From IMG/VR virus record IMGVR_UViG_3300042540_001822, positions 1-64,000 of that record: a stretch of 64,000 nt of DNA; one strand, given 5' to 3'. The translations under genes were made by a program, and so were the position numbers. Positions 26,431 to 46,656 of this stretch are shown here, one piece after another; within the stretch, counting starts at the first letter, position 1, and each line of letters begins with the position of its first letter. Under the pieces are notes generated by a model, which worked only from the letters and a program-made list of their open reading frames with translations, made no database searches and was not told the DNA's origin.

Positions 26431-26526
26431 ATACTTATTTTAATCCATTGGAGATTAATCTACTTAATGAGAAATTACATTATATTCTTGGTGTATGGGT
26501 GAAGAAAAACTGGACAAATAAACGAG

Positions 26527-26736
26527 TTAGTGATAATTCATAGGTAAACAATCACAAGATGGTATATCATAAAATTTCTCACCAGTTTCTATATCTTCCA
26601 GTGTGTAATATTTTGTTCCTATTTTCCAAGGAGCATATGTTTTTAAAATTTTATGAACTTTTCCTCTATACTTAATCAATGAACTATCACTAACATCAGA
26701 TACATTCAATTCTGAGTTTTCGTTTTCTGATTTCAT
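26527..26736 (-). CDS. cassette-derived small protein
   Basis: Stop lies in GTTA at 26526; leader …LNVSDVSDS crosses the right cassette end. Confidence 0.65.
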   Translation of the reverse strand: MKSENENSELNVSDVSDSSLIKYRGKVHKILKTYAPWKIGTKYYTLEDIETGEKFYDIPSCDCLPMNYH

Positions 26737-26871
26737 TTTATTCTATGGCTTTATGGTTTGGTGTTTGTTTTTACAAATATACAAATAAGTTTCGGGATCT
26801 CCAAATCTTACTTACACAAATACATCATATTCCTGGTGTATAAGTGAAAGAAAACTGGACAAATAAACGAG

Positions 26872-27090
26872 TTATACAACATTTATAAAATCCTCTATCC
26901 GTTGATTAACTCGTTTTATTTTTTCGTGATTTTCGTCTTGATGGTAAATCAATTCTCTTCTACAATATTCTTCGTAATTATGACCACGTTCCGCAACCAT
27001 CCATTTTTCTTTCTTTTCAAGTCTTTCTGTGAGAATTGATTTGATTTGTTTTAAATCACTCAAACTCATTGTTTTAATATTAAGTTCCAT
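26872..27090 (-). CDS. cassette-borne small helical protein
   Basis: Lies within the 10-bp inverted ends 26871/27109. Confidence 0.65.
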   Translation of the reverse strand: MELNIKTMSLSDLKQIKSILTERLEKKEKWMVAERGHNYEEYCRRELIYHQDENHEKIKRVNQRIEDFINVV

Positions 27091-27102
27091 AAAATAAACG
27101 TT

Positions 27103-27196
27103 GTATAACAAGGTATATACGAAATACCCTATTAAGGTTTATACTAAATTTTAAAGTTTGTTGTTAGGGTACTTCGTATATACCCAACCGTTATGT
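27103..27196 (+). mobile_element. attC-like site a
   Basis: TAAC-AA-[20-bp stem with one A.C mismatch]-CAACC-GTTA. Confidence 0.75.
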
Positions 27197-27197
27197 T

Positions 27198-27425
27198 TCA
27201 TTTTAGACGAGCATACCATTTCAATCTATCATCATTACCAATTTCAACTAATTCAAATTTAACTTTACAGTTTTCTAATATTTTCCAAGGATGAAAATTA
27301 AAACTCAACGGGTCTATTGGTAATTCACCATTTCTATTACCTGTTAAATTTGAGTTATCGCATTTCACAACCCAATAAGGTGTTGTGTTGAAATTGGTTG
27401 ATTTAATTAATATTCCTATTTCCAT
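27198..27425 (-). CDS. cassette-associated hypothetical protein
   Basis: Ends next to GTT 27190. Confidence 0.6.
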   Translation of the reverse strand: MEIGILIKSTNFNTTPYWVVKCDNSNLTGNRNGELPIDPLSFNFHPWKILENCKVKFELVEIGNDDRLKWYARLK

Positions 27426-27468
27426 ATTTATTTAAGTTTAAAACGACATTTATCTGTAACCGTTATGT

Positions 27469-27690
27469 TCAAGTTTTTGAAACAGGACTAACCTCCACAA
27501 TTTCAATTTGGGAAGTTTTATTCAACAGTACCCTATTAGAATATTTAGAAATAATAAAATCTCTAATATCATCAACTGTTGAATTTTCGTCAATTCCATC
27601 TTTCTTCCAAAAAGTCATAGTGTAATTTTGATTATTTCTAAATCTATCACCACTTTTAACAGATACGTTTTTTAATTTAACTGATACCAT
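27469..27690 (-). CDS. cassette-associated hypothetical protein
   Basis: Ends next to GTT 27462. Confidence 0.6.
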   Translation of the reverse strand: MVSVKLKNVSVKSGDRFRNNQNYTMTFWKKDGIDENSTVDDIRDFIISKYSNRVLLNKTSQIEIVEVSPVSKT

Positions 27691-27736
27691 ATTTTTTTAA
27701 TTTATAAAACAATAATTTAACTAAATAAAACAAAAA

Positions 27737-27970
27737 TTATGAGTTTTTCAGTTTTCCCCATCTTTTGTTAAATTCTTCATCTGTTTTAAGTTTTTCCAAA
27801 AATTCATCCTCTGAATAGTTTGAAGTTGTTGTTGTCTTAAATGGTAATTCAACCGGTAATTCTCTCACAACTTCCCATTTTCTTTGTTCTTCAGGATTCA
27901 TTTTTTCAAGTTCATCCATATATTGTCTCCATAATGGATTTTCATCTTCTGTATTTAATTTCCAACTCAT
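27737..27970 (-). CDS. hypothetical protein ending in NS*
   Basis: Carries the shared AACTCATAATTTTTG tail. Confidence 0.6.
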   Translation of the reverse strand: MSWKLNTEDENPLWRQYMDELEKMNPEEQRKWEVVRELPVELPFKTTTTSNYSEDEFLEKLKTDEEFNKRWGKLKNS

Positions 27971-28017
27971 AATTTTTTGTTTTTTATATTAATTTGTATA
28001 ATTTTTGTTTTACATAC

Positions 28018-28071
28018 TTATAACAAATGATAGACAACATTAAAACGATTGTTTATCATCGAACGTTATAA
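28018..28071 (+). mobile_element. attC-like site b (54 nt, CATTAAAACGA loop family)
   Basis: ATGATAGACAA/TTGTTTATCAT stem between TAAC and GTTA. Confidence 0.75.
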
Positions 28072-28075
28072 GAAA

Positions 28076-28246
28076 TTATTTTTTAATCACTATTCCATTA
28101 TCTTTACAAAATTTTTGATCAACAATCCATTTGTTTTTATCCCAATCCCAAACATACATTCCATATATTCTACCAGGATAAGTCATAGGTGGAATTTTTG
28201 TAAAAACCCCTTCTAATATTATTTTTTCTTCTTTCTTTTTCCCCAT
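28076..28246 (-). CDS. 56-aa cassette ORF (below the ORF-track cut-off)
   Basis: MGKKKEEKIILEG...VIKK*; inside cassette 28065-28276. Confidence 0.6.
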   Translation of the reverse strand: MGKKKEEKIILEGVFTKIPPMTYPGRIYGMYVWDWDKNKWIVDQKFCKDNGIVIKK

Positions 28247-28316
28247 TTGTGTATATTAAAAATAACTACTTATAACAAAGTGTAAATAAACACGCAAAAC
28301 ATTATGTGCAAGCCTA

Positions 28317-28490
28317 CTATTCCGCTTCGATATGATTATATATTAATTTCATTACCCAAGCATTTTCAAACTCATAGAACCCACAAGTCGAGCAAGCATC
28401 TTCTTCGGTATCATAGTAGATTATTTTACCTTCTTTATTTTTCATAAAGTCCATATTTCTAAGGTCTATGATTACATATTGGTCTTTCAT
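28317..28490 (-). CDS. 57-aa cassette ORF (below the ORF-track cut-off)
   Basis: MKDQYVIIDL...HIEAE*; inside degenerate cassette 28301-28538. Confidence 0.6.
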   Translation of the reverse strand: MKDQYVIIDLRNMDFMKNKEGKIIYYDTEEDACSTCGFYEFENAWVMKLIYNHIEAE

Positions 28491-28637
28491 TTCGTTTTAA
28501 AATTAAATTTAATGATGATAAGCCGCCCAGCACATAAGAGCGGTTTGGCAAGGCTTGTTGGTTGGTTTTATGGGTTTAGGGTGTGGGGTCGGGGAAGGAA
28601 AACTGGACAAATAAACGATTTATGTGTAATAAAAAAA

Positions 28638-28922
28638 TTATTCAGCACTCACAAAATGACTTTTCTTCAATTCAGAAAAAGTTTCAAATCTTTTTTGTTT
28701 ATCGTCAATTGTTAAAAGATAGTAATACTGTTCACCATATTGAAAATGTGCCTTCTTTTCAATTTTAGCATTACCCTTAGTAAAGTTTCCTACTTTTTTA
28801 TGTTCATCTCCCGAAAATATAAAGTCCATATTAATTGTGTATTGATACTCGTCATTAAACCAGTAATACTTGTCAACATTTTTATCATCAAAAAAAGATT
28901 TGAATTTCTTAATTATACCCAT
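28638..28922 (-). CDS. cassette-borne protein with CTS-like N-terminus
   Basis: MGIIKKFKSFF; cassette 28619-28958. Confidence 0.6.
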   Translation of the reverse strand: MGIIKKFKSFFDDKNVDKYYWFNDEYQYTINMDFIFSGDEHKKVGNFTKGNAKIEKKAHFQYGEQYYYLLTIDDKQKRFETFSELKKSHFVSAE

Positions 28923-28963
28923 TTTGTTGTTTTAATTTATTTTTTACATACACATAACAAGGT

Positions 28964-29164
28964 TTAGGTGTATATGTAAAATAAATCCAAGTTTCTATGT
29001 TTCACTCTACAAAACTTACCATCTTTAGTTTCAATTAAGAAACTAATATCACCTCTATCTAAGTTTATCTTTTCTCGAATGTATCCATCAACTAATGATG
29101 TTCCGAGATTGAAACTGATATGTGTCCCAACTTCTAATTCTTTGTTCATTTTACAATCAATCAT
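28964..29164 (-). CDS. hypothetical protein
   Basis: Start set at MIDCKMNKEL. Confidence 0.5.
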   Translation of the reverse strand: MIDCKMNKELEVGTHISFNLGTSLVDGYIREKINLDRGDISFLIETKDGKFCRVKHRNLDLFYIYT

Positions 29165-29214
29165 GTGTATAAATTTTAAGTTACTAAATACAACAACAAA
29201 TATAAGAAATAAAA

Positions 29215-29559
29215 TTAAACGCCAAACCAAGAACCATTGTGTAGATAACACTGATTTATTACCTCACCAGTTTCAGTGTTTTTAATATCGTATCTTGGTT
29301 TATCCTCTGTCAGATAAATTTTCCTATCAAAATAACCTTTAGTGATTATTGAAATATTTTTAATAATATCATATCCCATGTTTTTGTATTCTGAAAAGGT
29401 AATATATCTTTCTTTGCCTATATTACCATCATAAACTAACATCAACGGTTCTTTTGAGTCAACCCATCCTGAAAATTTATCATGTTTGTTGATGATATTA
29501 AAAACATCCATTCCTTTTGTGGTTACTTTTTCACCTAAATTAAATTCTTTCATATTCAT
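29215..29559 (-). CDS. hypothetical protein
   Basis: Start set at MNMKEF; the upstream extension overlaps attC c. Confidence 0.55.
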   Translation of the reverse strand: MNMKEFNLGEKVTTKGMDVFNIINKHDKFSGWVDSKEPLMLVYDGNIGKERYITFSEYKNMGYDIIKNISIITKGYFDRKIYLTEDKPRYDIKNTETGEVINQCYLHNGSWFGV

Positions 29560-29581
29560 ATTTTTGTTTAATTTTACATTC

Positions 29582-29635
29582 ATACAACAAATGATAAAAA
29601 ACATTAAAACGAACACATATTCTTAACCGTTATAA
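29582..29635 (+). mobile_element. attC-like site c (chimeric arms)
   Basis: Left arm resembles b/d, right arm resembles i; joined at the shared loop. Confidence 0.6.
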
Positions 29636-29641
29636 GTAATA

Positions 29642-29761
29642 TTATTTTTGTTCAAGTAATTTAATTAATTCATCATATTCTTGTTGATTTTCTTCTTTTA
29701 TTACTTTTAACATATAACCCATCGGTGTTAGGTATTCTTTCTTTTCTTTCTTCTTTTTCAT
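29642..29761 (-). CDS. 39-aa cassette ORF
   Basis: MKKKKEKKEYLTPMGY...LLEQK*; lies between GTT 29629 and TAAC 29789. Confidence 0.45.
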   Translation of the reverse strand: MKKKKEKKEYLTPMGYMLKVIKEENQQEYDELIKLLEQK

Positions 29762-29794
29762 AATTTTAAATTTTTTAACTAAGTATAACAAAAA

Positions 29795-30277
29795 TTATTG
29801 TTCATCACTCTCAATAACTATATCTTCTGAATCTAAATTTTCAGAAACCAATTCATCAACAACTTGCTCTATTGTCTTTTTATATTCTTCCATCTGTTCT
29901 TTTTCATTAATGTAGTCAATAATCTCATTTAATTTATTTCTAAATTGCGAAAGTTTTTGACCAATTGTTTCTTCTTGAAAATTTGATTCTCTTGATGTTT
30001 TTAATCTTTCTATTTTTTTCATATTGTATAATTTTTGATACTCATCTACAATTAGTTTTATGTTGTATGTGTCTTTGCTAAACTCTGATTTATGAATATA
30101 CCAAGTCAAAAAATCAACTAACAATCCACTAACAACAGGTTCATTCAATTTAATAACCTCGCTTTCTAATATAATTTCAGCAATAGTTGTCATAGCAGCA
30201 TTTTCCTCTTTATTCCACATATCCATTCCATATCCTGTCTTTTCTATGTATTTCTCTATCAAGTAATCTGATGTCAT
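29795..30277 (-). CDS. hypothetical protein
   Basis: 5' leader GTTAGGTTTAGTTAAATTATTG is shared with gene 32456. Confidence 0.6.
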   Translation of the reverse strand: MTSDYLIEKYIEKTGYGMDMWNKEENAAMTTIAEIILESEVIKLNEPVVSGLLVDFLTWYIHKSEFSKDTYNIKLIVDEYQKLYNMKKIERLKTSRESNFQEETIGQKLSQFRNKLNEIIDYINEKEQMEEYKKTIEQVVDELVSENLDSEDIVIESDEQ

Positions 30278-30315
30278 AATTCTTTTTTTAATTTGTAAAA
30301 CAATAATTTAACTAA

Positions 30316-30369
30316 ACCTAACAAATGATAAACAACATTAAAACGATTGTTTATCATCGGACGTTAGCG
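30316..30369 (+). mobile_element. attC-like site d (54 nt)
   Basis: Perfect 11-bp stem ATGATAAACAA/TTGTTTATCAT. Confidence 0.8.
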
Positions 30370-30648
30370 ACCATTAAAAGACCGCCACAATTCGACAAAC
30401 TTTTCACGTTTCATTTGCCTTAATTCTCTATTATGCGCATATTTTCTTTCGTGGTAAATTTCTATTTCACTACCACCTGTGAAGTAAACTGAATACGTTA
30501 ACCAGGAACTATCCCCGCCAACTTGACCTACTCTTTCAATTTTTCGTAAATCAATGGTGTCGCCCCCAATATCAACTAAAGGATTAACGGCTTCTAACAC
30601 ATTATTTGCATCAGTGGGGGTGTCGTTTTTCAAATTATCTTTCTGCAT
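30364..30648 (-). CDS. cassette-derived protein
   Basis: Stop in GTTA; leader …TDANNVLEAV. Confidence 0.65.
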   Translation of the reverse strand: MQKDNLKNDTPTDANNVLEAVNPLVDIGGDTIDLRKIERVGQVGGDSSWLTYSVYFTGGSEIEIYHERKYAHNRELRQMKREKFVELWRSFNGR

Positions 30649-30721
30649 GTTATTAAAGTTTTGTGCTTCAATTTAAGAAAAAACTACATATATCTGTGAT
30701 CGTTAGCAGTAATACTACCAA

Positions 30722-31018
30722 TCAGTGCTGATTTTTCAAATAATTTGTTGTACATTCTATCCAACACTTTGCTTTATCCGTATTATCCATAAAATCAACT
30801 TTATGAACAAATAAACAAGTAAATTTTTCAGACCATCCCATTGGTAGCCAAAGAGTATTCATGTATCCTTCCAATAATTCCTTATTAGATTTTTCAAATT
30901 TAGTTTCATCTCTTTGTGATAGCCAATCCTCACACATTCTAACTATCGGTTGGAATTCTGGTATTCCAATCACATTTACTATTTTATTCAATATTTTTTC
31001 AGATTCAAATTGATTCAT
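30722..31018 (-). CDS. hypothetical protein
   Basis: Start set at MNQFES; the track extension is an attC half-site. Confidence 0.6.
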   Translation of the reverse strand: MNQFESEKILNKIVNVIGIPEFQPIVRMCEDWLSQRDETKFEKSNKELLEGYMNTLWLPMGWSEKFTCLFVHKVDFMDNTDKAKCWIECTTNYLKNQH

Positions 31019-31061
31019 ATTTTTAAGTTTTGTGGTAAGGTACTTCGCATATGCCCAGCCG

Positions 31062-31280
31062 TTATGCAAAAGGTAGCGGACAACCGTTCGGTATTGTATC
31101 AGCGTCTACAATTTCAACATCCAGTTTTTCACACCAGTGTTTACCCCATCTGTATTCATGATTACCATCATCGTGAATATGATGAGGACATTGCCAACAA
31201 CACTCAACAACCACTACCCTTCGCATAACATTATGTTGCTGCAATGTGGGCTGACCGTTTTCATTTTTACTGTTGTTCAT
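31062..31280 (-). CDS. cassette-derived Cys-rich small protein
   Basis: CCWQCPH...WC...CPLP; cassette 31061-31229. Confidence 0.7.
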   Translation of the reverse strand: MNNSKNENGQPTLQQHNVMRRVVVVECCWQCPHHIHDDGNHEYRWGKHWCEKLDVEIVDADTIPNGCPLPFA

Positions 31281-31321
31281 CTATGTTTCTTGTTTTGTTC
31301 TTTTTACTCAAATTCGTAAAA

Positions 31322-31504
31322 TTACTGTTTTGTGTTTTCTAATTTATTCTCTAATTCCTCCACTTTGTTTCTCCAATATCTCGTAACCGTATATTGTGCT
31401 GAACGAATATAATCGTATGGATGAACATATCCACCCCATCTTAATTTATATTCTTCTTCTTCTAGAGTTTTCTTAGCCTCTTTCAATTCTTCCTCTATGT
31501 TCAT
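31322..31504 (-). CDS. hypothetical coiled-coil protein
   Basis: ORF track. Confidence 0.55.
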   Translation of the reverse strand: MNIEEELKEAKKTLEEEEYKLRWGGYVHPYDYIRSAQYTVTRYWRNKVEELENKLENTKQ

Positions 31505-31511
31505 ATATTCT

Positions 31512-31787
31512 TTAATTTGTATTTTTTAATTTATTCAAAGTAATCACGTTATTTAGTTGCACTTCTTTTAATGTGATTTTTCGTGTATCTTTAAAGTTTT
31601 CGATTACTTCATCCAAATTTTTACTCATGTGTTTATCAAAATCACTTTCAGTTGGGTGGTCTAGATTAGCCTCAAACTCTACCTCAAAACCGTGTTCACT
31701 TAAAAATTTCTTTAATAAGTAAGTTAAACGAGATTTACCAGATGCAACTTGCCCTGATACTGTAATAATTAAATCTTTCTTTTCCAT
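31512..31787 (-). CDS. small P-loop-like protein fragment
   Basis: ITVSGQVASGKS; promoter at 31819. Confidence 0.6.
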   Translation of the reverse strand: MEKKDLIITVSGQVASGKSRLTYLLKKFLSEHGFEVEFEANLDHPTESDFDKHMSKNLDEVIENFKDTRKITLKEVQLNNVITLNKLKNTN

Positions 31788-31928
31788 TTTATTTTTTTAT
31801 AGTTTAGTGTTTGTTTTACAAATATACGAATAAGTTTTCAGATTTCCAAATTTTATCCACACAAATACATCATATTTCTGGTGTATAAGTGAAGAAAAAC
31901 TGGACAAATAAACGAGTTATAAACAATT

Positions 31929-32162
31929 TTAAGAAACATGTTCCCTTGTATTGAGTTCCGTTTTAATTAAACTCAAAAAATCTTTATGTTCATTGTATTT
32001 TTGCTCCATATCTGATTGTGTTGCTCGTGCTTCCCATATCATTTCACCACATCCACAACTGCACCAATACCCGACACCGTAAAATCTTCTACGTTCTGCT
32101 TTGTAAAATCGTAATAGATTTTTTGTATTTAATTTTCTTAATTCTTCGATTGACTTTCCCAT
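31929..32162 (-). CDS. cassette-borne small protein
   Basis: CSCGCG; cassette 31916-32181. Confidence 0.65.
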   Translation of the reverse strand: MGKSIEELRKLNTKNLLRFYKAERRRFYGVGYWCSCGCGEMIWEARATQSDMEQKYNEHKDFLSLIKTELNTREHVS

Positions 32163-32174
32163 AATAAAAACTGT

Positions 32175-32270
32175 TTATAACAAGGTGTATATGTAATTTT
32201 TTTTTACAAAGATATGAATAATTTTTGAAATTTCCAAATAAAAAACTACATATACACCCAACCGTTAGGT
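32175..32270 (+). mobile_element. attC-like site e with a promoter in its loop
   Basis: 17-bp stem (one A.C mismatch); loop holds TTTG-N20-TATCTTTG on the minus strand. Confidence 0.75.
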
Positions 32271-32456
32271 TCAATCATTAATTTGTTTTGATTTTTTTAA
32301 TTCTTCTTCTAACTCTTTTAATTGAATTTCCCAATGTTTCTTAAATTTAATCCAAAATTCATTTCCATTAGGTCCTTCCACCTCAATCTTTTCTCCACAA
32401 AATTTTATTGATGTTTTACAATGTTCAATTTTATCCTCTGTTGTTAAGTAATTCAT
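32271..32456 (-). CDS. cassette-borne small protein
   Basis: Cassette 32264-32504. Confidence 0.6.
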   Translation of the reverse strand: MNYLTTEDKIEHCKTSIKFCGEKIEVEGPNGNEFWIKFKKHWEIQLKELEEELKKSKQIND

Positions 32457-32546
32457 ATTTCTATTTTTTTTAATTTGTAAAACAATAATTTAACTAAACC
32501 TAACATATAAACGAAAACTCGTTTATTTGTCCACTCTTCTAATTAT

Positions 32547-32969
32547 TTAATAACCAAAATCTCCATACAAATCTTGAAAAGATAAATCATTCATAGCACC
32601 TAAATCATTCCAATGTTCAAGATTATTATTCTTTTTTGATTTGTGTTTTGGTGTTGCCCTTTCACTTCTCGATGGCGGTAATGAATTATAAGCATCATCC
32701 CAATATTTTTGCCAAAAATTCAAATCTTCTTTTGATAAGTCTCTTAATTTGATGGTACATTTACTCAAACTTGTTAGAGTTTCTTTTTCTTGTATAGTTG
32801 CTTCGTTTTCATGTAGTTTCCCAACTAAATTTTGAAGCCACCATCCTTTAATTTGATAGTAAGGATGTTTTAGTCCTCTGTTGTCTAATACAGATTTTGG
32901 TATCCAACCATTACCTTCTAGTTTATATGCTTTCTCTGTTTCTTGAATAATATTTAATTTTACTAACAT
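32547..32969 (-). CDS. hypothetical protein
   Basis: ETEKAY...WIPKS N-terminal beta motif. Confidence 0.65.
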   Translation of the reverse strand: MLVKLNIIQETEKAYKLEGNGWIPKSVLDNRGLKHPYYQIKGWWLQNLVGKLHENEATIQEKETLTSLSKCTIKLRDLSKEDLNFWQKYWDDAYNSLPPSRSERATPKHKSKKNNNLEHWNDLGAMNDLSFQDLYGDFGY

Positions 32970-33069
32970 AGTTTAATGTTTAAATTTATTAATTGCCTCT
33001 CTAAAATTTTGTATTTCAATTTAAGTTTAGTTAAACACTACGTTTATACCCAACCGTTAGCGGTAATTG

Positions 33070-33261
33070 TTAAAGTTCTTCTTTTTCCATTTTACCACAC
33101 CTTACACAATATCGTGTTTGGATTGTGCCAACATAAGGATATTGTTGCCCTTGTTTAACTAATAACATATCTATATTTTCTTGTTTCCATTTAGTCCACT
33201 TGTGTCTCCAAAAACAACTACCGTTAACAACGGTTTGGCTAGATTCAGGGGTTGCTTCCAT
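33070..33261 (-). CDS. cassette-derived small Zn-binding protein
   Basis: CFWRHKW...CVRCG; leader SSQTVVNGS; cassette 33056-33228. Confidence 0.7.
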   Translation of the reverse strand: MEATPESSQTVVNGSCFWRHKWTKWKQENIDMLLVKQGQQYPYVGTIQTRYCVRCGKMEKEEL

Positions 33262-33390
33262 AGGTTTAAAGTTTGTTTTTACAAATATACGAATAAGTTT
33301 TCAGATTTCCAAATTTTATCCACACAAATACATCATATTTCTAGTGTATAAGTGAAGAAAAACTGGACAAATAAACGAGTTATCGGAAAT

Positions 33391-33693
33391 TCATTTTTCT
33401 TCCGACTCCTGCTCCGAAGAAGGTTGTTGCTTTTCAAATTCTTCTCTGATTTTAGTTAATCTTGAAAACTCTGCTACCCAAGCATCTAATGTCATTCCAT
33501 TTACTGAAATGTTTTCAAGCCTGTCCCTACCATCACCATCCCAATCAATTACCACTTCTCTACTACTACCCATTTGCCCAAGACTTCGTAGTTTTGAAAA
33601 AAATTCTAATAGTGGCTTTACTGCATCATCTGAGCAGGTAAATGAAATGACATTTTGAAAAGCAATGTTTGGTGTTTTAAATTTTTGTTCCAT
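33391..33693 (-). CDS. cassette-borne protein
   Basis: MGSSR...DWDGDG; cassette 33379-33738. Confidence 0.7.
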   Translation of the reverse strand: MEQKFKTPNIAFQNVISFTCSDDAVKPLLEFFSKLRSLGQMGSSREVVIDWDGDGRDRLENISVNGMTLDAWVAEFSRLTKIREEFEKQQPSSEQESEEK

Positions 33694-33731
33694 TTTAAAT
33701 TAAGTTTATTACCCACGAAAAATGAACTATC

Positions 33732-33827
33732 CGATAACACGGGTTTGGCAAAATGCCACCAAATAGTTTGTGCCAAGATTGAAAGTTCGTGCAAGGTGGC
33801 ACTTCGCCAAGCCCGAAGCCGTTATGT
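33732..33827 (+). mobile_element. attC-like site f
   Basis: CGGGTTTGGCAAAATGCCACC/GGTGGCACTTCGCCAAGCCCG stem, 18 of 21 Watson-Crick pairs. Confidence 0.8.
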
Positions 33828-33834
33828 GTAATTG

Positions 33835-34152
33835 CTACATTCCGTACATTTGAAGAACTATATTCTTTGAACGACATAATTCAGCCCAAGCTTCTTGACA
33901 GTAATTTCTACCGTGTAATGCGTTATTAAATTCGTGACACAATTCAGTTACCAATGATTCAATGTCTTGTGTTAAATCAATTTGTGTTTCGTATTGGTAT
34001 CTTCCACGCAATATTCCATCCTCGTATAAGTGCAATTCACTTTTCGCTCTTGTTTCTAAATCTACATAGAATTGGTCTTTTTCGCTATTGTAGTGCATTG
34101 ATGTAGAAATTCCTTTCTTTGCCAACGCTTTCATTATGTCTTGTATTTCCAT
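33835..34152 (-). CDS. hypothetical protein
   Basis: Promoter at 34179; ends next to GTT 33821. Confidence 0.65.
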   Translation of the reverse strand: MEIQDIMKALAKKGISTSMHYNSEKDQFYVDLETRAKSELHLYEDGILRGRYQYETQIDLTQDIESLVTELCHEFNNALHGRNYCQEAWAELCRSKNIVLQMYGM

Positions 34153-34287
34153 TTTATTTTTGTTTACTGTTTGTTTTACAAATATACAAATAAATTTTTA
34201 GATTTACAAATTTTACCCCCCACAAATACATCATATTCCTGGTGTATAAGTGAAGGGAAACTGGACAAATAAACGAGTTATGTGCCA

Positions 34288-34488
34288 TTAAGAACCATAA
34301 CCGTTTTTAACCATTTTTTGACGAATTTGTTCAGCTATTTCTAACTTTATCTTTTCGTCTTGGTCATATCTTCCAACAAGGAAATTAAATGATTTTAACA
34401 TTGCAGTCCTTAACTCAAGTTGGTCATCATTTGGATATATTTTCCACATATATTCAACAAATTCGGCTTCGGTTTTACATAATTTCAT
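34288..34488 (-). CDS. cassette-borne small protein
   Basis: Cassette 34277-34513. Confidence 0.65.
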   Translation of the reverse strand: MKLCKTEAEFVEYMWKIYPNDDQLELRTAMLKSFNFLVGRYDQDEKIKLEIAEQIRQKMVKNGYGS

Positions 34489-34506
34489 GCTTCAAAAATT
34501 AACGGC

Positions 34507-34597
34507 ACATAACAAGGTATATGTGAAATACCTTATAAAGTTTCTACTAATTTTTAAGTTCGTCTTTAGGTACTTCACATATACCCAACTGTTATAT
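34507..34597 (+). mobile_element. attC-like site g
   Basis: TATATGTGAAATACCT/AGGTACTTCACATATA stem (one A.C mismatch). Confidence 0.8.
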
Positions 34598-34921
34598 TCA
34601 ATTTTCAATTTGTTTTGGAATTTCTACCCATTTATTATCAACCAATTTATATCGTGTTTCATAATCAAATGAAGTCTCGGAAGCATCATTATTAAAATAT
34701 AAAATATTTTCCATATCCCAACTACTTCTATAAAAGGTGTGTTCGTTATTTTCACAATGAATTACAGTGTTTCCGTCCATAACTATCATCGCATTTATAT
34801 GTGTTGAAAATAACTTACCCCCACATATCGGACATTTATGTTCATATTCATTTATATCACACCAATAATCACCCATTCTTTTTTGTTGGTATCTAAACCA
34901 TTCTAATTTTTCTTTTCCCAT
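34598..34921 (-). CDS. Zn-binding hypothetical protein
   Basis: CPICGG. Confidence 0.6.
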   Translation of the reverse strand: MGKEKLEWFRYQQKRMGDYWCDINEYEHKCPICGGKLFSTHINAMIVMDGNTVIHCENNEHTFYRSSWDMENILYFNNDASETSFDYETRYKLVDNKWVEIPKQIEN

Positions 34922-35008
34922 AATTTTATATTTTACTTACACAAATATATCATATTCTTGGTGTATGTGTGAAGGAAACCTGGACAAATAAACGAGTTAG
35001 CAGAAATA

Positions 35009-35278
35009 CTACTGAGCGTTACTAACAGGAATTGCATCTGCATCTAAATTATGGTCGTGTCTTTGCAGTTCAGAAACTAAATAGTTATCTCTAACAGACT
35101 TGTGAAATGGCTCAACATAACCTTCTTTTGCAAAATACCATTCGCCTTGATAGTTAAACTCAAAGCCACTATCTCGCATACAAATTGACATAGTTTCACC
35201 ACTTGCAGTTTTTAAAGTTAAACCGCTAAAAACTTCTTCTAATTGGATACCTAAATCCTCTGTTACTGTTACTTTCAT
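35009..35278 (-). CDS. cassette-borne protein
   Basis: Cassette 34996-35333. Confidence 0.65.
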   Translation of the reverse strand: MKVTVTEDLGIQLEEVFSGLTLKTASGETMSICMRDSGFEFNYQGEWYFAKEGYVEPFHKSVRDNYLVSELQRHDHNLDADAIPVSNAQ

Positions 35279-35326
35279 TTTGTTATTTATTTAAGTTAAA
35301 AATTCGTTTTAATTACACCGTACTTC

Positions 35327-37736: not shown

Positions 37737-37946
37737 TTAGTGCTGACCATACCTCAAATGAATGTTATCATAATCAGTGTCATAATAAGCACCGTTTTCT
37801 TGCTTATGTTTCTTTATACATTGGTATAAATATATTTCGGTTAATCCAACCAAAGAACAATCACATTTATCCCAAACATTATACAGTTGTTTAATTTCGT
37901 CATCATTCAAATCTAATAAACTTTCTATTGTGTTCTTTTCATTCAT
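37737..37946 (-). CDS. hypothetical protein
   Basis: Follows attI-like junction 37726. Confidence 0.55.
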   Translation of the reverse strand: MNEKNTIESLLDLNDDEIKQLYNVWDKCDCSLVGLTEIYLYQCIKKHKQENGAYYDTDYDNIHLRYGQH

Positions 37947-38190
37947 AAATCAACGTTTTATATCAAGGTATAAATTCAATTAAATATTTTTACTATCTCT
38001 CTAACCTTATCAATCAAAAAATTAGTTTCTTCAATATGATGTTGTTCCAATCTTTTATACCTTTCTTCCCAAGTCAATGTATCATCATCCTTGTATTTTT
38101 TGATTTTAATCCACTTGTATGTTTCAAGTATTTCTTTCTTTTCTAATTCTTCCATAATAAAATATTTAATTAGATTTATACTAAGGAATA

Positions 38191-38409
38191 TTATTTTTGT
38201 TTTGAGAATGTTGATATAACACTATCAATAACTTCTTCTTTACTACCAATATCCCACCAATCTGGATTTTGTTTTAGTTTATACTCTGGATTATCGTTAT
38301 GATAAGTTTCTACCAACCCATCAACTAATCCATTCCACGAAATATTGTTCTGTTCTAAAACTGAAACAATCTCCGCATATTTAATCATTTTTTCTACTAT
38401 TTCTTCCAT
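38191..38409 (-). CDS. hypothetical protein
   Basis: ORF track. Confidence 0.55.
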   Translation of the reverse strand: MEEIVEKMIKYAEIVSVLEQNNISWNGLVDGLVETYHNDNPEYKLKQNPDWWDIGSKEEVIDSVISTFSKQK

Positions 38410-38549
38410 AATTTATATTTTTTAATAAGTTTCATATAACAAGGTGTATGGGAAATTTTTTATCAAATATACATCATATTCCTGATGTATGGATGAAGGA
38501 AACCTGGACAAATAAACGAGTTATAGCCAATACTACCGAAGTACTTCGA

Positions 38550-38978
38550 TTAAGCATTTAGTGGCTCATCAAAGATTACATTCCAACTATCTAATGGTTG
38601 CCAACCGCCACCCATAGTCATTACTTCTAAATCTGATGATGGTATATTTTTGAACGTAATATATTCGTCACCTTTATTATTTACTATTCTTGGTGATAGT
38701 TGAAAATCATCAGTCAATTTTGTTCTCAAAACACACATTTTACTAATCCCACCTTTTGATTTAGCATAGTATTTAGCATAATCTAAATCGTTTGTAAAAC
38801 TAATTGATGGTTGTTCTTCACCAGTTCTATTTGGTTTCATATATCCATCGTACTGTATATTCATTGCTTGTCCTTTACCTGTTCCATGATAAATATAATC
38901 ATCTTGTTTTATATCTTCATTTACAAATTGATTGAATGATTTAACCTCATCAATCATATCTCGTATTTCTTTACTCAT
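38550..38978 (-). CDS. ADP-ribosyltransferase-like protein with CTS-like N-terminus
   Basis: YIYHGT...PSISFTNDLDYAKYYA; N-terminus …KSFNQFVNE. Confidence 0.55.
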   Translation of the reverse strand: MSKEIRDMIDEVKSFNQFVNEDIKQDDYIYHGTGKGQAMNIQYDGYMKPNRTGEEQPSISFTNDLDYAKYYAKSKGGISKMCVLRTKLTDDFQLSPRIVNNKGDEYITFKNIPSSDLEVMTMGGGWQPLDSWNVIFDEPLNA

Positions 38979-39091
38979 TTTGTTTATGTTTATATAAAAA
39001 TATTTCTATGTTTCTACAAAAATACATCATATTCCTGGTGTATAAGTGAAAGAAAACTGGACAAATAAACGAGTTATAGATAATAAAATAT

Positions 39092-39340
39092 CTATTTAAT
39101 CTTAGTTCCTTTTGGAACAAATTTCTTCAAATCTTTTTTCAATTGTTTATCTACTGATTTAGAGTATTCTTCATCATTTTCAATCATCCAAGTATGAAGT
39201 TGAAGAAATTCTTTTTCTGATAGAGTTTCACCATCTAATTTACGTTGAATAAGTTTAGATATTTTACTATCTATAAAATCAGATATATTCAAGTTTTCTT
39301 GATGTTCGTTGAAACTTTGTATGTGTTTATTACCTTTCAT
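39092..39340 (-). CDS. hypothetical protein with CTS-like N-terminus
   Basis: KHIQSFNE; AATATATA at 39360-39367. Confidence 0.6.
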   Translation of the reverse strand: MKGNKHIQSFNEHQENLNISDFIDSKISKLIQRKLDGETLSEKEFLQLHTWMIENDEEYSKSVDKQLKKDLKKFVPKGTKIK

Positions 39341-39382
39341 CTTCGTAAATTGTTTTTAGTATATATTAAAAAGAAAACCTAA

Positions 39383-39436
39383 ATACAACAAATGAGAAAC
39401 AACATTAAAACGATTGTTTATCACACGACGTTGGCA
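39383..39436 (+). mobile_element. attC-like site j (54 nt)
   Basis: CAAC-AAATGAGAAACAA-CATTAAAACGA-TTGTTTATCACACGAC-GTTGGCA. Confidence 0.7.
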
Positions 39437-39720
39437 ACCACCTCTGTTGGAATTATTGTAAAATCCACCACTCTATACACACCATTTTCGTCTTCAAAAG
39501 AAATCTTACCAAATGTTTGTCCATTTTTAGTTTCCGAATCAGATACGTTAGTTTCAAACTTCAAATTTGAGTTTAATCGATCTTGTAAAATTTCTTTCAA
39601 ATCATCTACTGGTCCAAATAAGTTTTCTTCTATGAAAGACTTTACCTCGACTTCCACCAACATTCCTCTGTGACTTCTGTTTTCTATTTTCATCATGATT
39701 TTGGGTTTTAATTTGTGCAC
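39421..39720 (-). CDS. hypothetical protein whose C-terminus reads into attC j
   Basis: Ends …EVVANVV*; -7 box at 39742. Confidence 0.55.
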   Translation of the reverse strand: MHKLKPKIMMKIENRSHRGMLVEVEVKSFIEENLFGPVDDLKEILQDRLNSNLKFETNVSDSETKNGQTFGKISFEDENGVYRVVDFTIIPTEVVANVV

Positions 39721-39789
39721 CTTAGTTTATGGTTTGTTTTACAAATATACAAATAGGTTTTTTATTTAGTCTATATAAATATTCAAAAA

Positions 39790-40284
39790 TTAAAATCCCC
39801 CGCCGCCCCCTTTAAAATTAGGAACTAAATTGTATTTGATCCTATTATCATTCAGCATTTTTTGGACATCATCAAACTTATGATCATTTTTAAGATGTTC
39901 TAAAATGTCAATTTGTATAATGTAATCAAATATTGGAAAAGTTTCTTTGTTGGTAAAAATTCGTTCTTCCGATTGTGATTTATTAAATTTAAAGTAGGTG
40001 ACTGGTTTTATAACAAAACGATTTGATATTTTATCCCCGTCTAACATTATCCTGATACCACCCCATGTAAGAGATTTGTTTCTTGTACAGGAAACACTAT
40101 AATCGTAATTATATTTAGGCAAGTCATTATATCTTGTCAGAAATGTTTTGCTTTCTAATATAAAATATAAATTCATAAGATGGGTGAAATGGTATATTAT
40201 TCCTTCATTTTTTGATTCCTCTAAATGATCCTTCATCAAGAAGTTTTTAAACTTGTCAATGTGTTGTCTCATTTCTTTACTCAT
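39790..40284 (-). CDS. ART-like protein (DarT/DUF4433-like YHFT motif) with CTS-like N-terminus
   Basis: IIYHFTHLMNLYFILES...SVSCTR; AATATATA at 40296-40303. Confidence 0.5.
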   Translation of the reverse strand: MSKEMRQHIDKFKNFLMKDHLEESKNEGIIYHFTHLMNLYFILESKTFLTRYNDLPKYNYDYSVSCTRNKSLTWGGIRIMLDGDKISNRFVIKPVTYFKFNKSQSEERIFTNKETFPIFDYIIQIDILEHLKNDHKFDDVQKMLNDNRIKYNLVPNFKGGGGGF

Positions 40285-44582: not shown

Positions 44583-45070
44583 AGGTGGTTGGTTTATAAT
44601 GTAAAGATACGACATATCCCCGAGGATAAAAAATTAAACCCCGTTTTTTTCCAATTTATTTTTGGTCCAAAATTCCCCGGAGAAAACAAAGAATGCATAC
44701 GCATAAAACCCCGGGGTTTCCCATCCTGGCTTGGCCCAGCCTGGGCAGGCTGGGGCTCGGGCCTTGGCTGGGGATGGATAGGCCTTACCAGGCCAGGCTG
44801 GACCTGAGGTTAATAACCCGACGGTTTGATGTGTTTTATGGTTGGTTTCGTTCGGGGTTTTCGTGTGAAGTGGAAAGGGTATAAGAAGGTAGGATTAATT
44901 TAATGGAAAAAAACATACTCAAAACCTTTACTTTATGGAAAAAATGAATTGAAAATTGCCAATGATGATATTTTGGTGGAATAAAAAAGGCCCTCTTTTA
45001 TCGCGCGCTAAGAGTATGTTAGTGACATACTATGTTTTTGGGGGCCTTACCTATTTAAGCAAATAAGTTT

Positions 45071-45262
45071 TTACAAGGAATGATTATACCCATTAACCAA
45101 TCGTTCTGCAAATTCTTTATCCCTAGTTTTTAGGATAAGGTTTTTTGTTTGTTCTACATGCCCTCTGTGTATCTCATATTCTGTTGGAAATTTGCGTTCC
45201 AACAAAACAAGAGAATCTTTACCTTTAACAAATGCTTGACAGGAATCAGGGTTTGGTTTCAT
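45071..45262 (-). CDS. hypothetical protein
   Basis: ORF track. Confidence 0.55.
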   Translation of the reverse strand: MKPNPDSCQAFVKGKDSLVLLERKFPTEYEIHRGHVEQTKNLILKTRDKEFAERLVNGYNHSL

Positions 45263-45300
45263 GGGTTAGGTGTTACACGAATATACAAGTTATCGGAAAT

Positions 45301-45645
45301 TCATTTTTTTCCCGGATCAGTGTAAAAACAAAGTGTGTGGAATAAACCAAATGAAATTGATTTGAACTCTCTCGAAAAAATGTTGTAAGTGTTGAATAGT
45401 TCTTCAAACTCAAAATACATTTTATGTAGAATTTCATTTGCTTTTTCCCTTTCAATCTTACCTTTCTCTTGTTCAATTCTAACATCTAATGCGTTCCAAG
45501 CCAACGAATATACTCTTGCAATTAGTTTATCTGAAAATACCCCACACAACTGCATATTAGCCAGAAGTTTATTGTGTGCTTCGTAGTTTGGTTGAAGTTT
45601 TTTTAATTCTTTTGGTGGTTCACCAACTTGATAATCTAAGTTCAT
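45301..45645 (-). CDS. hypothetical protein
   Basis: Promoter at 45666; left end GTTATCGGAAATTCATTTTT identical to 33379. Confidence 0.65.
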   Translation of the reverse strand: MNLDYQVGEPPKELKKLQPNYEAHNKLLANMQLCGVFSDKLIARVYSLAWNALDVRIEQEKGKIEREKANEILHKMYFEFEELFNTYNIFSREFKSISFGLFHTLCFYTDPGKK

Positions 45646-45708
45646 ATGTTTAGTGTTTGTTTTTACAAATATACAAATAAATTTCTAAATTTTCAAATCT
45701 TATCTACA

Positions 45709-45948
45709 CTAATATACAAGTTGTAGGTAATGCCTTGAAAACCATTCCTCAAATTTCAATGCTTTGTCAGGAACATCTTTAATATCAGTATCCACACTTC
45801 TATTTTTGTATTGTTCCATATCAAACATTCTACCATTACTCCACGCCTTTCTAAGATGTTCCTTGAAAAAGGCACTACTCATAACAGCAGATATAAGCAA
45901 TTGCTCATCGCTGTTATTAAGTTTTTGTTGTTTATTATCATTCTTCAT
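45709..45948 (-). CDS. cassette-derived protein that starts inside the attC k loop
   Basis: Leader …EQLLISAVMSSA. Confidence 0.65.
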   Translation of the reverse strand: MKNDNKQQKLNNSDEQLLISAVMSSAFFKEHLRKAWSNGRMFDMEQYKNRSVDTDIKDVPDKALKFEEWFSRHYLQLVY

Positions 45949-46008
45949 ATTATCAAATTTTGTCTGTTAATTAAAAGAGCAACTGCTCATATCTGCAAAC
46001 CGTTTTAG
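45879..46008 (+). mobile_element. attC-like site k
   Basis: GCAGATATAAGCAATTGCTC/GAGCAACTGCTCATATCTGC, 18 of 20 pairs with two A.C mismatches; R' degenerate. Confidence 0.7.
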
Positions 46009-46021
46009 CTAATAAAATTTA

Positions 46022-46237
46022 CTACGCCTTTACCCATTTTTTACCATTGTGTTTTAATTCTACAACTTGTTTTAATTTCGTTTGTTCATCGTATGCTTCA
46101 ACATTACTACTGTCTAAAGGGTGTTCACCCCATCTGCTGTAAGTAAGTTGTTGTTCCCACAATTCTCTTGCCTGTTTTTCGTCCTTTGCCATTATTACAA
46201 CTTCTGCTTTAATAATGAATTTTTTAATTGTTTTCAT
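46022..46237 (-). CDS. hypothetical protein
   Basis: ORF track. Confidence 0.55.
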   Translation of the reverse strand: MKTIKKFIIKAEVVIMAKDEKQARELWEQQLTYSRWGEHPLDSSNVEAYDEQTKLKQVVELKHNGKKWVKA

Positions 46238-46278
46238 AATCCGTAAATTTTCAAATCTTACCTACACTAATATACAAG

Positions 46279-46656
46279 TTAGCGGTCAGCTTTAGACAGT
46301 TCACTTTTCAGCCACTCTTTACGCCAATTAAGACAGTAGTTAATGGCATCTTCAAGTTTCTTAAACTCTTTACTATGCGGTAATTCCATAAACATTGAAA
46401 TATCGTGAACATTACACACATCGTGTTTAGTTCTTGGACACACCCACCAATGAGTTTTTTTGTATTTAGTATAATCTTTGTTATCAGGTGGACAACCATC
46501 TAACCCACAAATAACATCAAAAGGCATAAAGATACCTTTCCAAACAACTTCCCAGCATCCACTACCTTCTGAATAGTTTTTGGGAGTTTTCAATGACCAA
46601 GCCGAACCGCTAACACGGGTTTGGCAAAATGGCTGTTCAGTAATTCTATTTGACAT
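46279..46656 (-). CDS. cassette-derived protein
   Basis: Leader …PFCQTRVSGSA; cassette 46278-46614. Confidence 0.65.
   Translation of the reverse strand: MSNRITEQPFCQTRVSGSAWSLKTPKNYSEGSGCWEVVWKGIFMPFDVICGLDGCPPDNKDYTKYKKTHWWVCPRTKHDVCNVHDISMFMELPHSKEFKKLEDAINYCLNWRKEWLKSELSKADR

Follow-up and report, generated by a model that had tools for sequence, protein, structure and literature searches.

A region of small genes in a large environmental phage genome is organized as a long array of gene cassettes, in which about 40 minus-strand ORFs are bounded by their own pairs of complementary ends and separated by DNA hairpins or by promoter and leader modules. Comparison with related phages favors, with fairly good confidence, an integron-like gene-exchange system borne by phages and associated with a small tyrosine recombinase, which seems not to have been described. 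The window, i.e., the whole analyzed stretch of 64,000 nucleotides, is part of a phage genome of 219-231 kb. The array occupies positions 26.5-40.3 kb and 45-46.7 kb of the window, and each unit is bounded by GTTA...TAAC. The two array segments, defined from the ORF lists, the intergenic map, base composition, and repeats, and the units analyzed are as follows.

26526..40284 (-), main cassette array with about 38 small ORFs (56-193 aa), all on the minus strand, 27-31% GC
45071..46710 (-), second short array segment with B'-type junctions
26526..26694 (-), cassette unit with complementary ends (13/15 after GTT), the ORF reads on upstream through the 5' end
26871..27109 (-), cassette unit, ends 12/15
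28065..28276 (-), cassette unit, ends 13/15
31061..31229 (-), cassette unit, ends 12/15
31916..32181 (-), cassette unit, ends 12/15
32264..32504 (-), cassette unit, ends 8/9 and then diverging
33056..33228 (-), cassette unit, ends 11/15
33379..33738 (-), cassette unit, ends 9/9, then a 1-nt indel, after which pairing resumes
34277..34513 (-), cassette unit, ends 11/15; its head-to-tail junction around hairpin 34510-34594 folds in silico at -51 kcal/mol
34996..35333 (-), cassette unit, ends 10/15
35675..36023 (-), cassette unit, ends 13/15
36894..37120 (-), cassette unit, ends 13/15
37161..37326 (-), cassette unit, ends 12/15
46278..46614 (-), cassette unit, ends 10/15
27462..27702 (-), cassette with a 90% identical homologue in another phage (locus L014); homology starts exactly at GTTA, and the junction on that side differs

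The earlier note had claimed that the GTT end and the AAC end of a unit are complementary to each other and differ between units, and this observation was confirmed. All 14 end pairs listed in it, the first 14 single units above, were found at their coordinates with the match counts given there, e.g., 26526/26694 with 10/10 (15/16 when extended), 28065/28276 with 14/16, and 34277/34513 with 13/14. Within-unit and between-unit complementarity, the comparison proposed in the note, was tested by permutation in two forms over 43 minus-strand ORF units. For the unanchored best 16-nt complementarity between stop-side and start-side flanks, the own-unit sum was 537 and was reached by 0 of 20,000 permutations. 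When anchored on GTT/AAC, with only the 15 following bases scored, the own mean was 7.26 against 5.58 and was reached by 0 of 50,000 permutations. About 16 of the 43 single-ORF units carry the signal (10-13 of 15), and the rest are decayed, multi-ORF, or bounded by other modules. The claim that ends differ between units is mostly true; however, units 33056, 37161, and 46278 share GTTAGCGGT, and units 35675 and 36894 share GTTATATTC, although their extensions still discriminate (18/20 own against about 13/20 cross).

The pairing proved longer than described in the note. In 253 well-paired cassettes from other phages it spans exactly 15 nt, with positions 5-8 paired in 97-99% and identity dropping to background at position 16. 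Position 11 is a systematic mismatch, with G at the 5' end in 87% and T at the 3' end in 100%. In 388 unique cassettes from about 220 viral loci, own ends matched at 8.8 of 14 positions, ends of different cassettes at 4.9, and the two ends facing each other across one hairpin at 4.8. The cassette can be written 5'-GTTA K N5 G T N3 ... N3 A T N5 M TAAC-3'. Units are coding in the sense direction, with an open-frame fraction of 0.83 against 0.54.

The junctions between cassettes comprise polar hairpins (TAAC, 5 nt, stem-loop-stem, 2 nt, GTTA), half sites, and type B or B' modules that follow TAAC and supply a promoter-like motif and leader.

27106..27193 (-), full junction hairpin, type A: TAAC, 5 nt, 20-bp stem, loop, stem, 2 nt, GTTA
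28021..28068 (-), full junction hairpin, type C, 48 nt, loop CGTTTTAATG
30319..30366 (-), full junction hairpin, type C
32178..32267 (-), full junction hairpin, type A, with a TTTG...TAnnTTTG promoter-like motif in the loop facing the next ORF
33735..33824 (-), full junction hairpin, G+C-richer type D
34510..34594 (-), full junction hairpin, type A
35330..35409 (-), full junction hairpin, type D-like
37117..37164 (-), full junction hairpin, type C-like
29585..29632 (-), chimeric hairpin whose two arms come from different families and are joined in the conserved loop; one core is GTTG
39386..39433 (-), type C variant hairpin with CAAC/GTTG cores
27426..27465 (-), half site: TAAC plus 5' arm only, then the leader of the next ORF
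30649..30705 (-), half site (TAAC plus 5' arm only)
31019..31064 (-), half site (TAAC plus 5' arm only)
32970..33059 (-), half site (TAAC plus 5' arm only)
35620..35678 (-), half site (TAAC plus 5' arm only)
26507..26525 (-), type B core directly after a cassette's TAAC (sense TCGTTTATTTGTCCAGTTT), an entry-site-like leader module
26852..26870 (-), type B core, long form with hairpin and TTTG/TAnnTTTG promoter (26737-26870)
28600..28618 (-), type B core, G+C-rich leader variant as in 52% GC phages; the preceding core is degenerate (TAAA)
31897..31915 (-), type B core, long form
33360..33378 (-), type B core, long form
34258..34276 (-), type B core, long form
34977..34995 (-), type B core
36875..36893 (-), type B core, short form, 25 nt before the next ATG
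37707..37725 (-), type B core, short form
38501..38519 (-), type B core followed by a type A 3' arm and GTTA
39054..39072 (-), type B core
32519..32537 (+), inverted copy of the type B core, forming a small hairpin before GTTA
45263..45288 (-), B' module after TAAC (TTGTATATTCGTGTAACACCTAACCC), closest in the window to the entry-site region of recombinase loci
46238..46277 (-), B' module after TAAC
45646..45719 (-), B' module, long form with promoter

The eight full sites of 48-90 nt have TAAC/GTTA cores and 10- to 20-bp stems in several sequence families and, judged by anatomy only, correspond to attC sites; the two variants with CAAC or GTTG cores come in addition. The polarity of the hairpins is fixed, with 5/2 or 5/1 spacers at the 8 sites of the window and at 564 of 735 sites across loci, these counts being conditional on a detector that requires TAAC/GTTA and a paired stem. 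The sense strand folded better for 10 of 10 sites. The same hairpin families occur in more than 120 viral contigs each. The type C hairpin 20-mer, the one family scanned in bacteria, was found in only one true context, a 1.4-kb AT-rich fragment, among 185,579 bacterial species genomes.

In related phages, a 265-aa Xer-like tyrosine recombinase with an intact R-K-HxxR-H-Y set lies just downstream of the array in 15 of 15 loci. In 80 loci chosen by the recombinase alone, 327 hairpins lie upstream on the same strand, against 19 downstream and 9 on the opposite strand, i.e., the cassette ORFs, which are co-oriented, read towards the recombinase. A conserved motif, TAAC|TATWATATATA, follows the last cassette's TAAC in at least 61 of 74 loci, mostly 51-52 nt before the ATG. 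Three contig pairs with 99.7-100% identity over 700 nt of entry site plus recombinase carry unrelated cassettes upstream, switching exactly at TAAC, which points to very recent cassette replacement. One near-identical pair (loci L090 and L171) switches just before GTTA instead, so exchange is not confined to one point. Homologous cassettes in different contexts keep the upstream hairpin in 10 of 24 cases and the downstream hairpin in 3 of 23, against a chance level of 0.036. The hairpin is thus linked to the ORF downstream of it rather than upstream, but only in about 40% of informative comparisons, as 14 of 24 upstream hairpins differ.

The window itself contains no recombinase: no Phage_integrase hit was obtained among the 40 ORFs scanned, a tblastn search with the array-linked recombinase gave no homologue (E > 0.05), and no integrase-family Pfam hit was found in the 98 kb of this genome that was examined. 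The entry-site motif TAACTATWATATATA gave one match at chance level in the window, the motif was absent from the flanks checked, and the type B and B' modules resemble the entry site only loosely. The array is therefore either served in trans or no longer active, and its many half sites suggest partial decay.

The anatomy of cassettes and junctions is demonstrated by these data, whereas the mechanism, including strand exchange on a folded strand, excision, insertion, and circular intermediates, is inferred from related phages, and no circular or excised form has been observed. We propose that the recombinase exchanges strands at the conserved TAAC/GTTA cores of folded hairpins, excises a cassette together with the hairpin upstream of its ORF, and inserts such units at the entry site about 50 nt upstream of its own gene on the same strand. 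In the excised, closed form the cassette's own 3' and 5' ends would flank the hairpin and extend its stem by 15 bp, a requirement that would keep the two ends of each cassette complementary while letting them differ between cassettes. In silico, head-to-tail junctions around a hairpin gained -19.2 kcal/mol with own ends against -5.4 with foreign ends, which is what a circular form would need. In this view, the G.T at position 11 and the excess of G.T over A.C mismatches indicate that the sense strand is the one that folds.

The hairpins and end pairings could alternatively be RNA-level signals, such as terminators, processing sites, or stabilizers, with the 5' and 3' ends of each mRNA pairing. 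Mosaicism would then arise from homologous or illegitimate recombination between conserved regulatory repeats, as proposed for PeSL motifs in T4-type phages (PMC2839356, PMC4122927), and selection would remove recombinants that break a stem. Mismatches are overwhelmingly G.U-compatible on the sense (mRNA) strand, 137 against 26 outside position 11 and 220 of 253 at position 11, and the greater stability of the sense strand agrees with this. Some loops and all long type B modules carry TTTG/TAnnTTTG promoter motifs, hairpins are followed by T-rich TTGTTAT, and the chimeric hairpin joined in the conserved loop shows that some exchange occurs inside repeats. The sense-strand G.U bias, promoter-like loops, and T-rich tails could equally reflect RNA-level roles. 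This explanation appears unlikely, as it does not account for the tight, polar association with a tyrosine recombinase and a fixed entry site, nor for switches exactly at a 4-5 nt core between contigs that are 100% identical on one side and unrelated on the other, and a 15-bp stem enclosing a translated ORF has no obvious role. The two readings are not exclusive, and hairpins may serve both purposes.

It is very improbable that the hairpins are selfish miniature palindromic elements (REPIN/MITE-like) inserted between phage genes, with ORF units that are not themselves mobile. A few conserved hairpin families have many copies across many phages, and ORF-less mini-units such as GTTA-N6-CGTTTTAATG-N5-TAAC exist. 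However, insertion of a palindrome cannot make the two ends of the neighboring ORF complementary to each other rather than to the facing end across the hairpin, and homologous ORF units occur in different contexts, bounded at GTTA/TAAC. No HUH Y1 (RAYT-type) transposase was found among the ten families Pfam-scanned out of the most widespread gene families of about 245 loci or in the window ORFs scanned.

The interpretation in the earlier note, that these are integron cassettes whose ends pair as R'' and R' in an excised circle, was only partly supported. The units behave as exchangeable cassettes bounded by GTT.../...AAC cores and separated by attC-like hairpins, and related phages show a tyrosine recombinase and a fixed entry site with cassette turnover, but the units are not canonical integron cassettes. 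An origin as ordinary bacterial cassettes picked up from a host integron and moved by a host IntI, with the paired ends as the usual R''/R' relation, is very unlikely. It is favored by the AAC...GTT cores, by the attC-like imperfect palindromes, and by reports of clusters of attC sites lacking an integrase (CALINs), with 2-3 attC sites, in virulent phages, including a Polaribacter phage, such attCs having been recombined by IntI1 (PMC9892861). It is opposed by the near absence of the type C hairpin from bacterial species genomes, the non-IntI recombinase and entry site of the relatives, the linkage of the hairpin to the downstream ORF, the ORF orientation, and pairing over 15 nt rather than the 6-7 nt of R''/R'.

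It is somewhat more likely than not that large environmental phages, probably of Bacteroidota, possess their own analogue of the integron. Its proposed parts are a short Xer-like recombinase, the entry site, hairpin-plus-ORF cassettes reading towards the recombinase, and 15-nt cassette-specific end pairing with a fixed G.T wobble, which closes the recombination site in the excised form or guides synapsis. Such a system would circulate accessory genes among phages rather than bacteria and would be either a sister or ancestor of bacterial integrons or a convergent invention. The window would hold one of its largest arrays, now without a recombinase in cis.

Integrons (IntI, attI, and attC cassettes, in sedentary chromosomal and mobile classes) share with the phage loci a tyrosine recombinase of the Xer/IntI clade next to a fixed entry site, arrays of co-oriented small, mostly ORFan cassettes, imperfect palindromes with AAC/GTT cores, and a variable newest-cassette position. 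In both, the start of each cassette is complementary to the far core of its own site, and read outward from the recombinase gene, the order (gene, entry site, G|TTA, cassettes) is that of integrons. In contrast to IntI, the recombinase has 265 aa against 315-337, lacks the IntI-specific insert, and scores 155 bits against a cut-off of 265 for the NCBIfam integron-integrase model TIGR02249, in two stretches broken near residue 180. It matches IntI4 (2a3v) in two stretches and its best PDB relative, archaeal XerA, in one. Integron cassettes join at G|TT in an attI site next to the integrase gene, and IntI recombines the folded bottom strand, with circular cassette intermediates. Integron attC sites are imperfect inverted repeats (R''-L''...L'-R') of about 57-141 nt with AAC and GTT cores, conserved in structure and variable in sequence, belong to the cassette whose ORF lies upstream, and move with it, and the ORFs read away from intI/attI, whereas here the hairpin lies upstream of its ORF and is only loosely linked to it, the ORFs of related loci read towards the recombinase, promoter-like motifs sit inside some hairpin loops, and the system is found in phage contigs and, to judge from the one hairpin family scanned, essentially not in bacterial genomes.

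Descriptively, and by hairpin anatomy alone, the array of the window may be called a CALIN, a class defined by at least two attC sites called by the IntegronFinder model with no integron integrase nearby; the absence of an integrase agrees with this. Compared with the phage CALINs of Qi et al. 2023 (PMC9892861), about 40 cassettes are present here, and relatives have a dedicated phage recombinase and entry site; no nucleotide similarity to GenBank phages was found, except to one 462-kb uncultured phage. PeSL mobile regulatory cassettes of T4-type phages (PMC2839356, PMC4122927) likewise occur in hyperplastic regions of small ORFs in large phages, with repeated promoter-plus-stem-loop modules flanking ORFs, and shuffling via small circles has been proposed for them. 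The type B long form (hairpin plus TTTG/TAnnTTTG promoter, about 130 nt, at least 5 copies) is comparable, but most junctions here are other hairpin families with exchange points at 4-nt cores, whereas PeSL exchange is thought to use homology between repeats with no dedicated recombinase, and PeSL units have no cassette-specific inverted ends. Among Xer recombinases with dif-like sites (XerC/D, XerA, and IMEX elements), the phage enzyme is closest in sequence to XerA, XerD, and XerC and has the same two Pfam domains, but there is no dif-like 28-bp site, and the enzyme sits at the end of hairpin-separated cassette arrays rather than serving chromosome dimer resolution or single-element integration.

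The window is phage DNA from IMG/VR contig IMGVR_UViG_3300042540_001822 (219 kb) and is 100% identical to positions 37709-101708 of a 231-kb JGI contig. Nearly all genes lie on the minus strand. Pfam searches of 40 window ORFs and PHROGs searches of 10 of them returned phage backbone functions, namely, a phage lysozyme, DUF932, HNH endonucleases, and a DnaB/RecA-like ATPase, while no recombinase was found and the cassette ORFs had essentially no hits. The one exception was a weak match to the Lar restriction-alleviation family. From 26.5 to 40.3 kb, and again at 45-46.7 kb, the G+C content falls to 27-31%, and there the genome consists of about 40 ORFs of 56-193 aa. Promoter-like TTTG...TAnnTTTG motifs, the Bacteroidota consensus, occur in intergenic modules. 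To the left of the window, the same genome encodes a ribosomal protein S21 homologue, a ClpB-like AAA protein, and a long run of glycosyltransferases and methyltransferases (L350:256-450 and L351, two stretches of this genome). Rfam at gathering thresholds found only tRNAs, with no RNA family over the junctions between cassettes, and ARAGORN called only tRNA-Met at 49619-49693. Further features in and around the array are as follows.

About 26330-26440, minus strand: a tRNA-like stretch with a GGTTCGAATCC T-loop just downstream of the last cassette, called by neither tool.
36036-36617, minus strand: the largest cassette ORF (193 aa), with the weak C-terminal match to the Lar family (E 9.5e-5, below the cut-off).
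40386-40697: a tandem repeat with 12-nt period and at least 17 copies, overlapping ORF 40418-40660, at the upstream border of the array.
40661-41196 and 44162-45070: G+C-rich stretches with no long minus-strand ORF inside an otherwise 28-39% G+C genome, flanking a replication-like module; a plus-strand ORF, 44268-44807, overlaps the second.
41569-41637, 44580-44643, 48381-48449, 48905-48973, and 49519-49582: a second repeated intergenic module, unrelated to the cassette junctions, in several copies of which a CCCCGG..CCGGGG hairpin and T-run precede a conserved ..TTTACA..AAC.. box.
50001-50098, 50202-50333, 52321-52407, and 54341-54436, minus strand: Rfam tRNA matches spanning 87-132 nt, well above tRNA length and not called by ARAGORN, which may be tRNA genes with inserts or introns.
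59436-60985 and 47792-48151: a tandem family of four or five paralogous small proteins, 44-64% identical, with a different copy number in a related contig (L349).

The observation in the earlier note, that each cassette carries its own pair of complementary ends, was confirmed, as every one of the 14 end pairs is present as described. The permutation test proposed there was run in two ways on 43 ORF units, and own-end complementarity exceeded every one of 20,000 and 50,000 random re-pairings. About 16 units carry the signal, whereas the others are bounded by different modules or have decayed. The pairing is longer than the note had recorded, often 15-18 of 20, and has a systematic mismatch at position 11, with A on the left end against G in the reverse complement of the right end, in plus-strand terms. 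No protein paralogy exists among the cassettes of the array, and unit-specific ends are therefore not a by-product of duplicated genes.

On the sense (minus) strand, a cassette reads GTTA, extension, short leader, ORF, extension, and TAAC, with the stop codon often inside or just before TAAC. Between cassettes lie four kinds of junction. Eight full hairpins, plus two variants with CAAC or GTTG cores, measure 48-90 nt, belong to several sequence families, and have the same polarity: TAAC, 5 nt (GNNNG), stem, loop, stem, 1-2 nt (usually TT), and GTTA. One hairpin (29585-29632) is a chimera of two families joined in the conserved loop CGTTTTAATG. For all ten hairpins the sense strand folds more stably than the antisense strand. 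Half sites keep only TAAC and the 5' arm. The 19-nt core of the type B modules, searched with up to 3 mismatches, gave 11 copies plus one inverted (9 of them exact), and it directly follows TAAC and leads, with or without a hairpin and a promoter, to the next ATG. Three related copies, termed B' modules, lie at 45-46.3 kb.

The same hairpins were found in other viral contigs. The type A 15-mer and the type C 20-mer each occurred in at least 120 stretches in IMG/VR, in contigs of 4-464 kb, and the type B 20-mer in 22 other contigs, including phages of 52% G+C. A reading of the type B core as a simple host promoter was rejected as the sole explanation, as the same 20-mer sits after varied cassette ends in phages of 30% and 52% GC. 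In the 52% G+C contigs (among L001-L027; e.g., L024:13478-13572), the identical 20-mer plus a C/A-rich leader and ATG-AAA-CCA-ACC start precedes the next small ORF, in many of these contigs one and the same ORF, and a start with the same first residues (MKPTPT) is also seen on the gene upstream of the core in L024. In 185,579 bacterial and archaeal species genomes, the type C 20-mer gave 14 hits, of which 13 lack the hairpin context (most lie in protein-coding sequence, several in one conserved gene) and one is a 1.4-kb, 30% G+C fragment with the true context. So the type C family, the only one scanned against bacterial genomes, belongs to phages, not to sequenced host integrons. Among GenBank phages, the array has no nucleotide relative except a 56-nt hairpin match in the 462-kb uncultured phage LR756500 (LR756500.1), in which the same GTTA...TAAC units with the position-11 A/G difference, and type A-like hairpins, occur in a 25% G+C region at 386-416 kb.

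A simple detector, which required TAAC and GTTA 34-170 nt apart, spacers of 4-6 and 1-3 nt, and at least 9 of 10 stem pairs of which at least 8 are Watson-Crick, found 735 sites in about 220 viral loci, with the 5/2 and 5/1 spacer combinations accounting for 564 of them. Between consecutive sites, 388 unique cassettes showed own-end matches of 8.8 of 14 positions, compared to 4.9 for unrelated ends and 4.8 for the two ends facing each other across one hairpin. In the 253 well-paired cassettes, positions 5-8 are 97-99% complementary yet variable, pairing stops after position 15, and position 11 is G at the 5' end in 87% and T at the 3' end in 100%. Outside position 11, mismatches that are G.T on the sense strand outnumber those that are G.T on the antisense strand by 137 to 26. 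The units are coding in the sense direction (open-frame fraction 0.83 against 0.54), although ORF-less mini-units of about 29 nt also exist.

Clustering of all ORFs of at least 150 aa from the viral loci retrieved put a roughly 265-aa protein second among gene families. It carries Phage_int_SAM_4 and Phage_integrase domains, and its best NCBIfam matches are XerA/'integron integrase' (185 bits, cut-off 220) and integron integrase TIGR02249 (155 bits, cut-off 265), the latter in two stretches. Its best PDB relatives are Pyrococcus XerA, then Vibrio IntI4 in two stretches broken near residue 179, then XerD. It is therefore a member of the Xer/IntI clade without the IntI insert. The catalytic R, K, HxxR, H, and Y residues are invariant in 13 sequences. 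In all 15 loci the gene lies just downstream of the array on the same strand. A search with the alignment found at least 471 viral stretches encoding relatives, and in the best 80 loci, chosen without regard to hairpins, 327 hairpins lie upstream on the same strand, 19 downstream, and 9 on the other strand. Metagenome protein clusters of this family number in the thousands and are labelled only as XerD. The nearest cultured-phage recombinases (Polaribacter Freya and Cellulophaga Ingeline) are only 38-41% identical, and Freya, which has no such hairpins upstream of its integrase, was rejected as a model.

In these loci, the AT-N6-TAAC of the last cassette is followed by a conserved TATWATATATA-like motif in at least 61 of 74 cases, mostly 51-52 nt before the recombinase ATG. 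Three contig pairs (L266/L267, L269/L271, and L336/L338) are 99.7-100% identical over 700 nt of this entry site plus recombinase, yet have unrelated sequence immediately upstream, with the switch falling at TAAC. In L266/L267, the replaced block begins just after an upstream TAAC-G, with a hairpin, and ends with a cassette's TAAC. Near-identical copies of the genome under study (L347 and L348) were also compared for recent cassette differences, but they are colinear, and apparent differences came from gene calling.

Thirty-one homologous cassette pairs were found in differing contexts. The hairpin upstream of the ORF is shared in 10 of 24 cases and the downstream hairpin in 3 of 23, against a chance level of 0.036. 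A window cassette (27462-27702) has a 90% identical homologue in L014, a contig of another phage, whose homology starts exactly at GTTA, next to a different junction. An initial reading in which the hairpin travels with the upstream ORF, as in integrons, was rejected by these comparisons. So the usual unit is the hairpin plus the ORF after it, with looser exchange on the other side. One near-identical pair (L090/L171) switches just before GTTA.

Read outward from the recombinase gene, the order is gene, entry site, G|TTA, and cassettes, which is the integron layout, except that cassette ORFs read towards the recombinase and each hairpin precedes its ORF. Strand exchange is inferred to take place at the TAAC/GTTA cores of folded hairpins. 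If a cassette is excised and closed on itself, its 3' extension, the hairpin, and its 5' extension become contiguous and form one long stem. Junctions modelled in this way gain -19.2 kcal/mol with own ends against -5.4 with foreign ends on the sense strand, and -13.5 against -3.9 on the antisense strand. In this view, the ends must match within a cassette and are free to differ between cassettes, as the earlier note argued. The invariant G.T at position 11 makes the two arms distinguishable. The anatomy, the statistics, the association with recombinase and entry site, and the breakpoints rest directly on the sequence comparisons, whereas catalysis by this recombinase, the reactive strand, the exact cleavage bond, and the circular intermediate are inferred. 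The interpretation of the earlier note, which had compared the units to integron cassettes, is partly supported, being right in spirit (cassettes, site-specific exchange, and a closed intermediate as the reason for self-complementary ends) but wrong in family assignment.

In the window itself, neither a recombinase homologue nor an entry-site motif above chance was present. No integrase-family gene was found in the 98 kb of the 231-kb source contig that was read (record positions 18.5-116.6 kb, leaving about 130 kb outside the search). Type B and B' modules occupy the position of the entry site after TAAC, share a loose T-N-G-T-W-T-A-T core with it, and B' also shares AACACCTAaCCC, but this relation is only suggestive. 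The array may depend on a recombinase encoded elsewhere in the genome or in a co-infecting phage, or it may be a decaying record. Fragments of 25-46 aa, 83-93% identical to the array-linked recombinase, are detectable in six loci retrieved through their hairpin motifs (L142, L155, L170, L172, L212, and L229), which suggests arrays that lost their recombinase.

Integrons are regarded as bacterial devices, and their phage occurrences so far are a few borrowed attC sites. A dedicated, widespread phage system of the same logic would explain how hyperplastic ORFan regions of large phages are built and exchanged. It would also give a tractable model for two open integron questions, namely, how cassettes acquire their sites and what a minimal, IntI-insert-free recombinase needs to act on folded DNA. 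The 15-nt cassette-specific pairing with a fixed wobble is a new, testable specificity feature. The cassettes are a large pool of unknown phage accessory genes, plausibly with host-takeover or anti-defence functions.

The closest systems are integrons and the CALINs reported in virulent phages (PMC9892861). Literature searches found no description of a phage-specific system with a Xer-like recombinase, although the coverage was incomplete and prior description elsewhere cannot be excluded. The PeSL promoter-stem-loop cassettes of T4-type phages are a functional parallel without a dedicated recombinase. Membership in the integron family fails on the integrase, on ORF orientation, and on attC linkage; the working principle is nevertheless integron-like.
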